The notes under the pieces are model-generated. The model was not told where the DNA came from, did not search any database, and saw only the letters and a list, made by a program, of their open reading frames with translations. Positions 42,962 to 50,196 of a DNA stretch of 64,000 bases are shown piece by piece (position 1 is the first letter of the stretch; the number at the start of each line of letters is the position of its first letter). Origin of the DNA: Schizochytrium sp. TIO01. Its lineage: Eukaryota; Protista; Bigyra: Labyrinthulomycetes. The stretch lies in contig SMSO01000031.1 of the NCBI GenBank assembly GCA_004764695.1, forward strand, positions 1,836,436-1,900,435, written 5' to 3'. The position numbers and the translations under genes were made by a program.

Positions 42962-45322
42962 CTAGCCCGAATTTGATTTTTTCAAGTAATAAGCACCACT
43001 TGAAACCTCCAAAATTTCGTCCTTGACGAGCTTATCGAGAAAGGCTTCTAGCTCATTAATGTTTTTCTCATACTTGTGCTCACCTGTTGAGACAAACATT
43101 TTCAGCATATTATGGATTCTCTCCAGTGGCAGAGCATCGTAGTTATTAAGCATACCTCTTACGAAAGACTCGTACACCTTCATCTCCTCAGCAAGTTGAG
43201 CGTCCGCAGAAACAGCACGATCGGCGTCATCATCTTCACCGCCGCCATCATTTCCGCCCTCGTGTTCGTCAGAAAGGCTCTCAACCGCGTGATAAATTAC
43301 CTTTTCACCAGGCGAGCGCTCAGAGCGCACCACGCCAGCATTGACCCAAAATGACATTCGCTTTCTTACAGTATCTGCATCAACATCAATGGCTTTAGCA
43401 AGGTCAGAAAGTGTCCAAGTTTCCTGGTCAGCAAAATGTAAAACAAGGTTTGCCAGCATCGGAGACACAGTGAAGGTCTTTGTTTGATTGTCGTCAAACT
43501 CAAGCTCCAAGGAAACCATACCGAGATTAGATTTCCAGTTGAGCTGACGCGGATTCTTCAGGACAGCATATTCGTGTGCAATGGCCTCCATGCGTTTGTT
43601 GATGACCGGGTGTGGTTTGATATCATCACCATGAAGAGTTGGCCAGAATTGTTTGGAGATGATTGTCGCCTCCATAGCCTCAAGTTCGATTCTATCTGAG
43701 CTGTCGTCACTCGATGCCATCGATCGTTGGGACTTGTTCGCCAATGTGTTCTTAATGTTGCTGTTGATACGCTTGGACTCTTCAATATCCTTGACCATGA
43801 TTTCACAGCTTGTCATGGAGCTCTCGCCAAAACGAAGTTTCAAGAGCTCAAGGTTACGCACTTCGCGTTCAGCATCAAACTCCAGAGAAGACAGAAGCTT
43901 GTCAGCTAGCATCAAACGGTATTCGTTTACAAAAAGCTCCTTGGAGCCGTAGATATGCACAAGCATACCAAGAATGTCATTGGATCGGCGACTGCGCGAT
44001 GTCTTACGGGGGTCTGCTTCGATAGGGTCTGGAGTCCAGTCTTCTGGGTCAGCTGTTTCCTCAGGGTCTTCATCGTCACTTTCGTCGTAATTATGGGTAA
44101 TGGGCCTGATCTCCGTCTCTCGAAGCTCCTCAAAAAGCTCAGAGTTTCCATCATCAGTGAGACTAGTGACGATACAGCGTACTGTGTCTTCTCGTTTTCT
44201 AAGGTAGGACTTGATCGGCTCGCTAATAGCTTCGAGCAGCACTCCACTGGTATCGACAAGCCGCAACGCTTTGATGGTTGAAATGTACACGTCGAGAATT
44301 TGCGCCGTGTTGGCGCCAGGGTGCAGAAGTCGAGAGGCAAAAGCCTGCCTGAGACTAATAACAAGGTCACGATGCTGATGTGTACGTGCAAGGCAGTCTT
44401 TAAGATCCATCAGCGCTGGTGAGCTATCGGGGAACTCACGGATGATATCAAATACTTCAGTCATGCGCAGGTCACAAAGCGTTTCGAACACGTGAAATTC
44501 AAGTCGTGTGCGGTACTGTGCAAACTTCTCCTTGCAAACATTTTTATCAGCTATGCAGCCCTCAAGAAGCTCCCTTAGCCACGAGAGTGCCACTGAGTCT
44601 AGCCATGCGCTCACACGTCCTAAGAGATGTTCCTCAAACTTCCCCTTGCACACCCTTGTGATATTTCGCTCCGTCTCCTGGCACAGTGTATCCGACAGCG
44701 GCTCCTCAATAAGTTGGAACCATTCCAGCTCTCCCATCTGCTGGCCAAACTCCTCCAGCGGCATTAGATTCTGCACTACCGTGTCTACGTCCATGTCATC
44801 TTCATCCTCATCTTCGTCATCTACATCTTCTTCTTCGTCATCTTCGCTATCCTCAGCATCTCGAGCCTTCTGGTCTCTCTGATGCTTTGCCAGTGCTCGT
44901 CCCAAGTATACGTGTACGCGCCTCCTGAACTTCTTCAGTTGAGCCGCGTCGCCGAGCAGCAGGACGTTATTGAACCTCGACCTCACCGCTGCACAGCAGG
45001 AAGTACTGCTTTGAGCTGCCTCGCAGCGTTTCGCAGCCGAGTCAAATGCGCGTGCAATCCGAAGCAGCGGTCGGAGCGTATCGCTCGCGATTTCCATGCA
45101 CGCGCCCACGTCGCAGGCGTCTGTTTTCAGGGCACTCGCAAAGGCCTCTACAGAAGGGCGCAACCGTCGAGACTCCATCTCTACCAGTAGCCATTCTTGC
45201 AGTAGTGGTGCGAGGTGGCGGTCTGTTAGGACGGCATCGAGGGCGGATTCAAGGTGCTCGCCCGAACTAGACCCGTCCAGGTGCTGGGAGCACGCATCCA
45301 GACACGCTGTCCACGCGGACAT
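42962..45322 (-). CDS. ANAPC2: Anaphase-promoting complex subunit 2
   Basis: FDIIREFPDS, RLLHPGANT, YLRKREDTVRCIV, WTPDPIEA, ELFVNEYRLMLADKLL, LELLKLRFG and LERIHNMLKMF. First ATG is at 45322. Confidence 0.96.
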   Translation of the reverse strand: MSAWTACLDACSQHLDGSSSGEHLESALDAVLTDRHLAPLLQEWLLVEMESRRLRPSVEAFASALKTDACDVGACMEIASDTLRPLLRIARAFDSAAKRCEAAQSSTSCCAAVRSRFNNVLLLGDAAQLKKFRRRVHVYLGRALAKHQRDQKARDAEDSEDDEEEDVDDEDEDEDDMDVDTVVQNLMPLEEFGQQMGELEWFQLIEEPLSDTLCQETERNITRVCKGKFEEHLLGRVSAWLDSVALSWLRELLEGCIADKNVCKEKFAQYRTRLEFHVFETLCDLRMTEVFDIIREFPDSSPALMDLKDCLARTHQHRDLVISLRQAFASRLLHPGANTAQILDVYISTIKALRLVDTSGVLLEAISEPIKSYLRKREDTVRCIVTSLTDDGNSELFEELRETEIRPITHNYDESDDEDPEETADPEDWTPDPIEADPRKTSRSRRSNDILGMLVHIYGSKELFVNEYRLMLADKLLSSLEFDAEREVRNLELLKLRFGESSMTSCEIMVKDIEESKRINSNIKNTLANKSQRSMASSDDSSDRIELEAMEATIISKQFWPTLHGDDIKPHPVINKRMEAIAHEYAVLKNPRQLNWKSNLGMVSLELEFDDNQTKTFTVSPMLANLVLHFADQETWTLSDLAKAIDVDADTVRKRMSFWVNAGVVRSERSPGEKVIYHAVESLSDEHEGGNDGGGEDDDADRAVSADAQLAEEMKVYESFVRGMLNNYDALPLERIHNMLKMFVSTGEHKYEKNINELEAFLDKLVKDEILEVSSGAYYLKKSNSG

Positions 45323-45844
45323 GGCGCCCCGCTTCGTGGAGCTTTGATTTCTGTTTGTCTGCAAGAGCTACAAGGGCAGTGAAAAGCGTCTGATTTTATC
45401 AGACGAAATTTTAAGAGCGTTTTTACTAATTTTTATTCTCTTTTCTCTTTCTCTTTTTCTCACTTTCGAAAAGCATGATCAAAAAACTTTACCTGAAATA
45501 GAAAATCGAGACAGCTTAAAGCACACAGGCCTCATCCCTGTCGAGCAGTCATTGCAGCCCAGACACGACTCGAAGACAGCATCGAGCAGAACAAAGAACC
45601 TCTGCAGGGTCCTGTTTGTGATACATGAAAGTTGGTTCTTTAGAACGCGTTGTGCGTCTAAAGTGTACATGCCTTATGCACCAGTACAGCTAAGTAGCTG
45701 ATCTAGCTAGGCATTAGCGATAATAACGCTCGAAGAAGGCGTGCAAAAAGTTGACCTTACGATCAAACCTCGATTGCCGAGTCCCTGTGGGCAACCACTG
45801 GCTCGAGCAGCGCCGCGAGCTGGCTTGGCCTGGCTCGCTAGAGG

Positions 45845-46513
45845 ATGACGGAAACGGCGGATGCGGCTTTCGTGTACCGCGTGGCCGGGTTCTCTTCGTG
45901 TCCGTACTACACGAAGGCAACGCAACATGCGGAGTATGTGAGAGATCAGGTCCGTGAGCAGAACTTATCTGACGTGGATAATTTTGATGTATACACGCTG
46001 GAGTTTCCCACCAGAGATGGTTTTTTTCAGTGGCTTGATGACCACCGGCAGGAGATTAAAGCTCCCGAAAGCCACCGCTCAAGCCCTGCGATTTGGCGCG
46101 AGGCGCGAGGTGGGACGACGACTTTTGTTGGTGGTCTCGACAAATTATCTATGGACATTGAAGTGCAGACCGGCGGGCGTACTTGGCCCACCTCAGGAGT
46201 GCAGCTGACCAACAACGTCGGTCGTGTGGTGATCTCCAAGGTTATGCTGGCGCTAGCCTTCATATACGCGGTTGTACTCCTCATATTTAACTCACCGAAG
46301 GAGTATCGCTGGTACATCTCCACACCAATTACCATCGCAGTTGTCGTATATGGACAGCTTGTAGTCTCTGCATGAGTACTCAACACGCTCAAGGCAAATC
46401 TTCTTTCTGGGAAGATTCAACCCAAGATGCTCTTACGCGTCATTGGGCTTATTGTACTTGGGCGTGCAGTCGGTTTTGCGGTTGCTTACGTATTTGTGCA
46501 CTGGATACCGTAG
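45845..46513 (+). CDS. Putative selenoprotein: glutaredoxin-like domain plus three-helix membrane domain, Sec at TGA 46373-46375 (222 aa)
   Basis: AGFSSCPYY, HRSSPAIW and FVGGLDKL indicate a Grx fold. The frame stays open for 45 codons past TGA, including a hydrophobic helix, to TAG 46511-46513. SECIS-like element downstream. Confidence 0.8.
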
Positions 46514-46768
46514 AGGAATTTGTTTCCTTTCCTCTCTCTTTCTTCGAAATCTCTCGCGGCACGGCAAATGATTCCGTTTGACATTGAGGTGTTCTTTGTT
46601 AACATGAGATATTGCTTCTCTTCGAATAATAGGCACAATGACACGATCCATTTTTTATGCCTTGAACATTTTGAGGAACCACCAGCGAAAAGCTGCTGAG
46701 TATCTATCTACCAAGCAAAGAAAATTGCACTTTGCTTAGTCCTGGTGCAAACTATAGAGTTAAAATCT

Positions 46769-46834
46769 AGCCCTGATGACGGTCTACCCCAAAATTCTGA
46801 TTGATGGAAAGGGGTCAACTACCCGAAGTGGGTT
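46769..46834 (+). promoter_or_regulatory. Eukaryotic SECIS element (type II) in the 3' UTR
   Basis: Helix I AGCCC/GGGTT; core ATGA(46776)-C opposite CGAA(46824); helix II GGT..CCCC/GGGG..ACC; unpaired AAA 11 nt after ATGA; apical mini-stem TTCT/GGAA. Folded by eye. Confidence 0.8.
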
Positions 46835-47216
46835 CAGTCAATATTCTTTCTTACTTTTAAGAAGACTAATAGCATATTTATATAGCCTACATCATGATTT
46901 TTTATTTTATATCTAAAACAAGACCATCATGAACACTCGTTTCTCCCAAATGTTTTTAAAATGCAAGCTTCCTTTTTTTTCTTCATAGTTAAAACACAGA
47001 AAGATAGTTGCAAATTTAGACAAGAAGATTGTCAGGATTCATTCATAACTTAAGAGAAATATATACTCAAAAAGGAGCTCTGCTTCTACTGTCATACGAG
47101 AGAGGATAAGTTGGACTACATAAAGCGATTGAAGTTGGACTGTGCTTAAACTCTGCTCAAAGGCCACTGTAAGCATATACATGACCATAGATATCAGTGG
47201 CACTAGAGTTGTCCGA

Positions 47217-48848
47217 TCATAGGCGGGCTGCCTGGCCTACGTACTCAACGCGGTAGTCCTGGGTGAGGTCAGGTGCTTGCGCAAGCATACGGTAATACGT
47301 CAAAGTGCTTTCTGGCCAAAGAGAAAAGGGCTTGCCCTCCTTGTTTAGATACCAAGAGCCACAGTCTTTGGTCCAAACACGCTTATCGAAACTCTTCCAC
47401 ACCCAGTCATAGTACTTGGCAAGGACATCCGGCTTGACTTCAACACGGTCAATACCCTGGTCAATGGCTTGCGAGAGCATGCGTGCGGTATACAGAGCCT
47501 GGGACTCAACCATTGCGATAATGGAGTTGTGACCAAGACCTGTGTTTGGACCCAACAACATAAATGAGTTCGGACAATCTACAATCGAGGTACCAAGGTA
47601 TGCTTCGACGGCCTTTTCGTTGATGTCTGAGCCAGTCAAACTAAACCCATTTGCGCCTGCGAGCTTTGCATTGCCAATGCAGCCAACTTTAAAGCCTGTC
47701 GCGTAGACAATCACGTCAGCCTCGTGCTTGACACCACTTGCATCAACTACACCGTCAGCTTCCACGTGTCCAAGCCCATGTGCAACGAGCTCTACGTTAT
47801 CTCGCATCAATGTAGGCAAATACTCATCAGTACGGCAAATGCGCTTGCAGCCGACATTAAATTTGGGTACGCACTTTTCAATGAGATCGGGGCGGCCTTT
47901 GAGGCACTTGAGCATCTCCCCACGAATTAAGTGCTGTGCCATTGTCTGGGCTGGGCCAGACCTATCGAAGACGCCAAGCAGAAAGTTTGCCTCCATCATC
48001 ATGTAAATAGATCCACGGTGGGCTAGCTCGGCTCCGGGGACATGCTCAAAAATCCATTTTTGCCAGTCAGAGTACTTCTCCGCAGGAAGGACAGCCATCG
48101 CGCGAGGGGAGATCCAATTTGGAGTACGCTGCAGAATTGTGAGTTTTTTAGCTTGGCGAGCTAACTCTGGCGCTGCCTGGACTGCGCTGGCCGCAGACCC
48201 AATCATGACTACGTTTTTGCCACGAAAGTCATAACCGTCACGCCACTCAGCAGTGTGGAACGAATCCCCCTGAAAATCTTCAATACCAGGTGCATTGGGG
48301 AAGTTTGGATAGTGAAGAGCGCCGATACAGTTAATCATGAAGCGTGGCGAGAGACTTGTGCCATCGTTAAAATTCATGTGCCAGCGGTGGTTCGCTTCGT
48401 CCCAAGTTGCTGATTCGAGAGCTGTATTGAACCGGATGTGGCGACGCAGGTCATACTTTTCTACAACATGGAGCAAATACTCGTGAATTTCCTTTTGCGG
48501 TGCATATGGTTCTGACCAGTCCATTTTACGTTCAAAGCTAAACGAATACAAATGTGCTGGGACATCGCATGCTGCACCAAAGTATCGGTTCAGGAACCAT
48601 GTTCCACCAATATCGGACTCTTTCTCGACAATGGTGAACGGAATTCCTTTTTCTTTGAGTTTAATGCCCATGCAAATGCCAGAAATGCCACAGCCAATGA
48701 TCACCACATCCTCCGGATCCAGTCTCAAAGCTCTGTTCAAAGCAACTTCGCTCCGAGCAGCACGATTCCACGCATTTTGTGCTGATGCCAGCGCTCCGAC
48801 GCTCACAGCTGCTGCTGCGCCCAGCACCACCTTACTCTGCCTATCCAT
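47217..48848 (-). CDS. Baeyer-Villiger/flavin-containing monooxygenase with PTS1-like C-terminus
   Basis: IIGCGISG, GGTWFLNRYFGAACDVP, BVMO fingerprint FQGDSFHTAEW, IGSAASAVQ and ATGF; ends ARL. Start is 48848 or upstream ATG 49043. Confidence 0.93.
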   Translation of the reverse strand: MDRQSKVVLGAAAAVSVGALASAQNAWNRAARSEVALNRALRLDPEDVVIIGCGISGICMGIKLKEKGIPFTIVEKESDIGGTWFLNRYFGAACDVPAHLYSFSFERKMDWSEPYAPQKEIHEYLLHVVEKYDLRRHIRFNTALESATWDEANHRWHMNFNDGTSLSPRFMINCIGALHYPNFPNAPGIEDFQGDSFHTAEWRDGYDFRGKNVVMIGSAASAVQAAPELARQAKKLTILQRTPNWISPRAMAVLPAEKYSDWQKWIFEHVPGAELAHRGSIYMMMEANFLLGVFDRSGPAQTMAQHLIRGEMLKCLKGRPDLIEKCVPKFNVGCKRICRTDEYLPTLMRDNVELVAHGLGHVEADGVVDASGVKHEADVIVYATGFKVGCIGNAKLAGANGFSLTGSDINEKAVEAYLGTSIVDCPNSFMLLGPNTGLGHNSIIAMVESQALYTARMLSQAIDQGIDRVEVKPDVLAKYYDWVWKSFDKRVWTKDCGSWYLNKEGKPFSLWPESTLTYYRMLAQAPDLTQDYRVEYVGQAARL

Positions 48849-50196
48849 ATTGCAAGAGTGTCCTTCCTGTCCTGTCTGCCGGCTCGTGTTTCTTCTTGCC
48901 CAGTTTTCAATCTTGCTGACAGTATCTTCTTCTTGCGTTACGCTCTTGCTGTTGTCAGCGCTCTCGGGAACCTGACAGCTTTCTTCAATTCGGTTTTGCC
49001 AGGCTTCTTCGCTATCTAGATCGTCATGAACTGTGCATTGCATTTCCCTTCCCCTAATGTTCTCCCTTTATCTATAGAGTCCTCTTAAATGCCTATGGGT
49101 AGGAGGACTCTTTTGACTACTTATAATTTTCCTTCGTCTTTATTTTGATCTCTTGTCCCATAATTCTTCAATTTAAAGCCGGCTATAGCGTGAGCAGTGC
49201 TCAGTTCCCAACCTCTATTCTACCCAGCGCTCTCTATATCTCCTTCTCATTTCCCGTTTCCATTTCTATCGCAATCCGTCGTCATCTATTGCAGCTTTCC
49301 GTCCTTTAAATGAAGAAAGGTACTAGTATATCTGTTAATAGTAGTAGGTAGGACTCGCTAGTTCCAGCACTTAATAGCTTTACCTGTTATCGCACATTTC
49401 GTTGCACAGCGATACATTGCAACTCATGTTGCTAACAAATTGGAGCTCTTGTTCGCGCATCGTGACGACCATCGAGCCCGCATAACAAACCTCGGCAATG
49501 CTGATAACGTCCCAGGGGTTACATTGTTTAAACGATGCGCAATCTCGCGTGACCTGCGAGACCCTCCGCAAGAACCCTGTAGCGCATTCATCGCCTTCCG
49601 AACCCTAATTTTCTTAGGAGTTATCACTAGACGGGACTAGCAGCCGGACCGGTTCTTGAGCTGAGAACATTATGACTGCACGACACCCGTGTAAGCTTTA
49701 AGAATAGCAACTTGCCAGAGGCTGCTTCAGCTTAGGTTATAGCAGCTTGAAGAGTGGAGGATGCGCTAAACTTTGATGGCGGCAGCGAGCTGCTGTTTGT
49801 GGCTTGAATACTGTGCTTTTAGGAATAATGGTGAAGGACATCAAGAGCAACTGCTAGCTAGGAAGTTCACACGCCCAGACATAAATCCATTCATTTGCTT
49901 GCATGCAAGCAAATCATTCGCACTTTTATCACCTAAAAACAAAATTGGTACGTTGCGAGGCAGAAAGTCTTAGACTCAGGTATAGGAGAGAGACAAAGGG
50001 TTTAGGGGAAACCTTGTACCTATTTGAAAGTAGAAAGGGCTCCTGTGTATAGCGCATCGCTTCGACGCTACAGGGTCAGGACTGCATGTACCGTCCAATC
50101 TTGGTGCAGCAAGTGCGCACAGGGGCAGGTGTTGGCAGTAGGTAATAGTATTATTTGTTATGTTACGCTGCAAAATCATTCAGGTAGATGTACTAT

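Follow-up and report, generated by a model that had tools for sequence, protein, structure and literature searches.

The gene at positions 45845-46513 (plus strand) of a 64,000-nucleotide stretch of the Schizochytrium sp. TIO01 genome, hereafter the window, very probably encodes a 222-residue selenoprotein in which an in-frame UGA specifies selenocysteine (Sec, U177) by means of a SECIS element at 46767-46837. It most likely represents an undescribed selenoprotein family, set apart from the known family MSP by sequence motif and architecture. A first-pass annotation based on the letters of the window alone had proposed a hidden membrane selenoprotein of 222 residues that standard annotation truncates, and this proposal is upheld by a stop column common to diverse homologs, a conserved tail beyond the UGA, a SECIS core, transcript-like contigs and the Sec machinery of the genome.

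Re-reading of the sequence placed the start codon, the in-frame TGA and the terminal TAG at 45845, 46373-46375 and 46511-46513, respectively, as had been claimed. The first coding part (45845-46372, residues 1-176) opens with the ATG at 45845 and corresponds to the annotated 176-codon ORF, which has the C-terminus ..VVYGQLVVSA and is followed directly by the TGA at 46373-46375, taken here as U177 on the basis of the frame, the homologs and the contigs. Beyond this codon the frame remains open for 45 codons, reading VLNTLKANLLSGKIQPKMLLRVIGLIVLGRAVGFAVAYVFVHWIP, up to the TAG; this second coding part (46376-46513, residues 178-222 together with the TAG) is delineated by alignment to the tail of a homolog, by its GC and codon pattern and by hydropathy. 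A GC content of 0.48 with a coding-like codon-position pattern (0.62/0.33/0.49) persists to the TAG, and the drop to 0.37-0.41 comes after the TAG and not at the TGA. The chance of encountering 45 open codons past a stop in random sequence is about 11% ((61/64)^45), and neither the open frame alone nor a SECIS-like hairpin alone exceeds chance. It is the comparative evidence, together with a lineage-specific SECIS core, that takes the case beyond chance.

Shared end of the homologs and the conserved tail beyond the UGA

An exhaustive phmmer search recovered 17 relatives, to which a profile search added only P0042; the sole named homolog is from the thraustochytrid Hondaea fermentalgiana (P0002), while the exact 176-residue protein is already on record from JGI and MMETSP. 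Nine lineages, namely the window protein, Hondaea P0002, P0003, P0004/P0019, P0008, P0013, P0042, P0015 and P0017, stop at a single shared column of the alignment, in most cases as Q-x5-stop within a hydrophobic helix. They include all relatives that possess the membrane part; P0006 ends one residue before this column. The relatives in this set show 23-54% identity to the window protein. The 26 residues preceding the stop are the best-conserved part of the protein, with 81% identity between the window protein and its Hondaea counterpart as against 53% overall. Such an exact common end, in a helix that lacks a polar cap, is not expected of a natural C-terminus, and ends at a common column are instead the pattern left by gene callers that truncate a selenoprotein at its UGA.

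Examined at the protein level, the Sec column is thus occupied by a stop in nine lineages and read through as W in a single copy, and neither the phmmer nor the profile searches yielded a homolog with Cys at this position. The copy that is read through, P0037 (JGI, 225 residues), belongs to the 90% cluster of P0013 and is identical to P0036, P0038 and P0039 up to the point where these siblings stop, after which it continues with a W and 49 further residues. The simplest explanation for this W would be a TGA translated with a genetic code that assigns it to Trp; hence, the identity of the stop codon in the homologs, which are available as proteins, rests on the P0037 read-through.

The P0037 tail could be aligned with the 45-residue tail of the window protein over 38 columns, with LLSGK and VFV..IP in common. 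The alignment has a score of 47, as opposed to 20.9±4.1 for shuffled sequences, and none of 2000 shuffles reached 47. The window and P0037 lineages share only about 25% identity outside the tail, and the conservation of the tail, as judged from this alignment, at least equals that of the rest of the protein. Among further searches, a metagenome scan with P0008 and a word search using the P0037 tail returned no match, a metagenome scan with P0037 gave a single contig end covering the first 61 residues, and the ESM Atlas offered nothing above 0.9, with leads below 0.9 only.

Transcript-like contigs and genomic neighborhood

Logan contigs from three studies, whose underlying runs are only guessed to be RNA, were placed on the region. 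Transcript-like contigs start at 45776 (X4 and X5) or 45823 (X10) and end at 46887 (X5) or 46980 (X10), with X10 covering 45823-46980 (1160 nt), X5 covering 45776-46887 (1143 nt) and X4 running from 45776 onward; the 5' and 3' UTRs are accordingly delimited as 45776-45844 and 46514-46980 on the plus strand. None of the contigs provides depth upstream, between 45500 and 45775. The transcript-like contigs are colinear across 46373-46375, show no joints, carry the TGA unchanged and include the SECIS-like element, and the TGA is also identical in the genome assemblies. These limits match a single unspliced mRNA containing the SECIS element, with the caveat on the runs applying equally here. The first-pass annotation had called for a transcript that is unspliced across 46373 and extends to 46834, and for reads in which the TGA is not replaced by TGG, TGC or TGT: the contigs of all three studies bear out both, reaching as far as 46887 or 46980, insofar as the runs are RNA.

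The strain differences seen comprise four substitutions (46788 C>T, 46843 A>G, 46866 C>A, 47069 A>C) and an inserted GC behind 46631. They are confined to the 3' UTR, with none among the 669 coding bases, the extension included. Contig X5 additionally carries 31 loose letters ahead of 45776 that match nothing in the window and could stem from an upstream exon, a chimera or an adapter; no AG precedes 45776. On the downstream side lies a convergent FMO-like gene (47217-49043, minus strand), with the two 3' ends being about 35-130 nt apart, and X4 (3547 nt) spans both this gene and the selenoprotein gene. The upstream neighbor (42962-45364, minus strand) is an intron-less gene for an 800-residue homolog of the APC/C subunit 2, ANAPC2, with an acidic D/E-rich insert.

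A SECIS-like element of the type used by the genome

The first-pass annotation had noted a SECIS-like element about 260 nt after the TAG. Such an element is indeed present on the plus strand at 46767-46837, 263 nt past the TAG, and its AUGA, AAAA and GA signatures as well as helix I could be read; it is assigned on the strength of its fold and the match of its core to the genome's own SECIS elements. Helix I is formed by pairing of 46767-46773 with 46830-46837, and is followed by the 5' core UG-AUGA-CG (AUGA at 46776-46779) and the 3' core C-GA (GA at 46825-46826). The AAAA at 46791-46794, situated 11-14 nt past the AUGA, precedes a small apical stem, and helix II consists of 3+5 bp around an internal loop. 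One of the strain differences, 46788 C>T, converts a C-G pair of helix II to U-G.

A scan of the genome located further SECIS elements at L009:2284-2344, L012:2224-2293, L013:1134-1200 (minus strand) and L018:2181-2228. Those of GPx, SelT and SelH, which served as controls, lie 232, 253 and 328 nt past the stop codon, respectively, and have a UG-AUGA-CG core with AAA 14 nt downstream; the core UGAUGACG is identical in the candidate and in all three controls, and the SelK element has CGAUGACG (CG-AUGA-CG). The C-GA 3' core of the candidate resembles those of GPx and SelT. The SECIS elements of this genome have in common a core that is specific to the lineage, (U/C)G-AUGA-CG; AAA follows at about 14 nt, and the elements are situated 230-330 nt past the stop. 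A SECIS candidate near an Rdx gene (L011, minus strand, 336) folded unconvincingly and was left uncounted.

The specificity of this core was gauged on both strands of the window (128 kb). The core 8-mer occurs at five sites, the four others being devoid of structure or inside coding sequence. Structured AUGACG motifs number two, which translates to an expectation of about 0.01 in a 700-nt UTR. Another hairpin-bearing TGATGACG site (25917, minus strand) was set aside as coding sequence, being located within a 1329-residue ORF. On generic energy the candidate is unremarkable: an AUGA..AA..GA hairpin of equal or better energy is found about once per 10 kb in the window, the candidate ranks 12th of 118 by energy in 2x64 kb, and its helix II is weak (-8.9 kcal/mol versus -14.7 to -35.9 for the three controls). 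The Rfam model SECIS_1 found no match in the region, in the whole genome or at the GPx, SelT and SelH control loci. Its silence is uninformative because the model also misses the three genuine elements of the genome.

Selenocysteine machinery and other selenoproteins of the genome

The genome assembly searched comprises 64 Mb in 37 contigs, with the window corresponding to G000:C30:1836436-1900435. It contains a tRNA-Sec (70 bits, anticodon tca), SepSecS, selenophosphate synthetase (SPS) and an eEFSec with the eukaryote-specific domains euk_SelB_III and eEFSec_4th. The presence of tRNA-Sec and eEFSec, on which the first-pass annotation had made its proposal depend, was therefore confirmed, and from these matches the machinery is complete-looking. 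In three classical selenoprotein genes a TGA occupies the catalytic position, namely those for GPx (NVATT-U-G), SelT (C-T-S-U) and SelH (C-K-S-U), and SelK is encoded by a separate gene (L018).

Some of the matches have features of their own. The SPS match (L020, G000:C36:4255747-4256697) lies in a 647-residue open frame, about twice the usual length of SelD, and may represent a fusion; its locus shares a contig with the tRNA-Sec gene, the two being about 31 kb apart. A third GPx-like match (L010, G000:C13:4969500-4969694) covers model positions 1-64 only and has an internal TAA, which could reflect an intron or a broken copy.

Domain architecture of the predicted protein

The N-terminal part of the protein (about residues 9-105, nucleotides 45869-46159) was identified as a glutaredoxin (Grx)-like thioredoxin-fold domain from its fold, profile matches and conserved columns. 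It contains the single Cys of the protein, C19, in the motif CPYY (codon 45899-45901), a cis-Pro motif SSP (P81; TSP-like in the family) and FVGG, which holds G96 and G97. The motifs singled out by the first-pass annotation in proposing a Grx-like N-terminus, i.e. CPYY, SP and FVGG, are all present and conserved, and the fold and profile matches agree with it. Columns conserved throughout the family comprise C19, P81, G96, G97, the TGG of a TGGRxW linker, R155, P161 and Q171. As a stand-in for the full-length window protein we used an AlphaFold model of P0037, which has W at the Sec column. In this model the N-terminal domain has a pLDDT above 90, two confident helices end at the W/Sec column and the tail is of low confidence.

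Foldseek searches returned thioredoxins or glutaredoxins as all of the top matches. The most significant profile matches were to the N-terminal domain of MDH1B, the 'putative malate dehydrogenase 1B' of radial spoke 3 of cilia, in two axoneme structures (PDB 9fqr and 9d2f; E=1.8e-9 and 3e-8, with about 95 residues aligned); Foldseek aligned the same domain with an rmsd of 3.4-3.6 Å and 23-24% identity. Profile matches to PDB glutaredoxins were marginal (E=0.004-0.03). Pfam searches with the head, with the tail and with 16 members returned no family, Glutaredoxin included; a match to DUF6132 (E=0.18) was dismissed. Taken at the level of predicted structure and profile similarity, the head is a thioredoxin/glutaredoxin fold homologous to the MDH1B N-terminal domain, with which it has AG..CP(Y/F)Y.KA, H.(T/S)SP.(I/V)W and GG in common. 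In the axonemal MDH1B this domain is fused to a soluble body resembling a dehydrogenase, whereas in the window protein its fusion partner is a Sec-bearing membrane hairpin. With E=0.11, the family profile also reaches the N-terminus of PPIL6 (PDB 8j07_S), a hint that the MDH1B-type Grx-like head belongs to a broader and as yet unnamed family of domains in ciliary proteins. A weak paralog of the head is encoded elsewhere in the genome (L007:1291-1812; G000:C33, approximately 4570371-4570892), with 31% identity over residues 15-108 (E=0.03). This 173-residue ORF has an N-terminal hydrophobic anchor and the motifs CEYT, HTTSPVIF and FLGGVDQL, and is without the Sec-bearing membrane hairpin.

The head is followed by two helices predicted by hydropathy to be transmembrane: the first, approximately V128-F148 (46226-46288), corresponds to the helix at 125-145 in the P0037 model, and the second, approximately Y157-A176 (46313-46372), which bears the conserved P161 and Q171, runs straight into the UGA. 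Beyond the single Sec comes the LLSGK stretch and then a third predicted helix, approximately M195-V218 (46427-46498); in this, hydropathy concurs with the earlier suggestion that the post-TGA frame completes a third helix. The window protein has no signal peptide. Positive charges are concentrated ahead of helix 1 and past the Sec, and by the positive-inside rule this distribution indicates that the head and the Sec are on the same face of the membrane, probably the cytosolic one.

Relationship to known selenoprotein families

The first-pass annotation had likened the membrane part to the membrane selenoprotein (MSP) family, which is known from Ostreococcus, Chlamydomonas, Volvox and Dictyostelium (Lobanov et al. 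2007, PMC2375036). MSPs possess an invariant LVG(S/A)-U-CWP in the first membrane helix (supplementary alignment, PMC2375036), followed by about 150 residues past the Sec with conserved Cys motifs and further helices; they have no Trx domain, and the Dictyostelium protein contains two Sec (PMC2375036). In common with them, the window protein is predicted to be a small multi-pass protist membrane selenoprotein whose Sec is located in or at a hydrophobic helix, and it comes from a family found almost only in the Sec form. In contrast, it has VVSA-U-VLN in place of U-CWP, 45 Cys-free residues past the Sec, and a Grx-like domain ahead of the membrane part. As it departs from MSPs both in the U-CWP motif and in the Cys-containing region of about 150 residues, and as no V-G-[ST]-U-C-W-P site is present in the whole genome, it is not a member of MSP. 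The earlier comparison is thereby reduced to a short local resemblance, of ..LVGS-U-....SL(T/S)G in MSP to ..(V/I)G(S/A)-U-....LLSGK in the window family, read by eye from the text of the alignment.

The protein resembles the CPYC class of glutaredoxins in its thioredoxin fold, the first Cys of CPY(C), the cis-Pro (TSP, akin to TVP) and a GG(C)DD-like motif, with some of its relatives carrying IGGCDDL; unlike in that class, the second active-site residue is Tyr or Phe, i.e. it is of the monothiol type. Algal GRX selenoproteins reportedly carry their Sec inside the active-site motif, whereas that of the window protein is 158 residues away from this motif, at the membrane. SELENOK and SELENOS, too, are small selenoproteins anchored in the membrane, and their Sec faces the cytosol, as is predicted for the window protein. 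They differ from it in that they span the membrane once, carry the Sec close to the end of a disordered C-terminal tail and lack a redox domain, and the window protein shows no sequence similarity to them. A survey of 42 algal selenoprotein families, which include GRX and MSP (Jiang et al. 2020, PMC7539508), describes nothing with the architecture of the window protein in its text. Our literature searches brought up no description of the family, nor of any thraustochytrid selenoproteome.

Competing interpretations of the in-frame UGA

The TGA could be a true stop, with a 176-residue protein ending in a membrane helix and both the open codons and the SECIS-like motif being coincidental. Such coincidences are individually not far-fetched, given the roughly one-in-nine chance of the open frame, the frequency of generic hairpins and the weak helix II of the candidate, and all database gene calls but one do end at this column. 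We nevertheless consider this reading unlikely: it does not account for a tail conserved between lineages that have only about 25% identity elsewhere, for the genome-specific UGAUGACG core, whose distance to the stop is that of the control genes, for the nine lineages ending at an identical column in mid-helix, precisely where conservation peaks, or for a fall in GC that comes at the TAG and not at the TGA.

The conserved tail attests to continued translation, as opposed to a particular inserted residue, and would be equally compatible with a near-cognate tRNA inserting Trp, Cys or Arg at the UGA to generate an extended isoform, as the W of P0037 might literally be taken to indicate. This is very unlikely, considering that the 3' UTR harbors a SECIS element of the genome's own type, that the organism has a Sec system and other selenoproteins, and that eight other lineages keep the stop and have not drifted to a sense codon, as would be expected if Sec is required. 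The least probable interpretation is that the TGA is spliced out, an assembly error or a strain polymorphism (TGG/TGC). Nothing was found in its favor except nearby GT and AG dinucleotides, and over 46373-46375 three transcript-like contigs from different studies agree exactly, and colinearly, with the genome assemblies. An intron over the TGA was rejected on the basis of these colinear contigs. Decoding of the UGA as Sec hence remains the best explanation.

Proposed mechanism and implications

If the UGA is decoded as Sec, the Grx-like head of the MDH1B N-terminal type would lie on the cytosolic side, connected by the conserved TGGRxW linker to a helical hairpin in the membrane. The Sec would be positioned exactly at the end of helix 2, on the same face as the head, with the LLSGK stretch and the third helix following it. 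Sec177, at the membrane surface, could then be the residue that reacts with a membrane-associated oxidant or substrate. Cys19 might resolve the oxidized Sec177 by forming a selenenylsulfide with it, and the Cys19-Sec177 pair might be recycled by glutathione that the Grx-like domain binds. Such a Cys-Sec relay is plausible, and fits a protein whose only Cys and only Sec are predicted to be on the same side of the membrane. More speculatively, the window protein might be the founding example of a family in which a membrane-surface Sec and a head Cys form a glutathione-driven couple whose substrates would be found in the membrane, lipid hydroperoxides for example, a GPx4-like job performed with unrelated parts, and might be distant kin of the Sec helix of MSP; we put this forward tentatively, as a possibility that is rather less likely to hold than to fail.

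To our knowledge, new eukaryotic selenoprotein families are rare, and almost all of those we know of carry the Sec either within a soluble redox motif or on a flexible tail. On the Sec reading, every copy of the present family in the databases would be truncated or, in the one case of P0037, mistranslated as Trp. With the core UGAUGACG at 230-330 nt past the stop, a SECIS descriptor is gained for a lineage whose elements are all missed by Rfam SECIS_1. A Sec that closes a membrane helix, paired with a single Cys of the Grx-like head, would constitute a simple, testable two-residue redox design, and through it the orphan N-terminal domain of the MDH1B/PPIL6 type gains a possible redox context. 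If the distant kinship with MSP is true, the window protein would also provide the first functional clue for that family.
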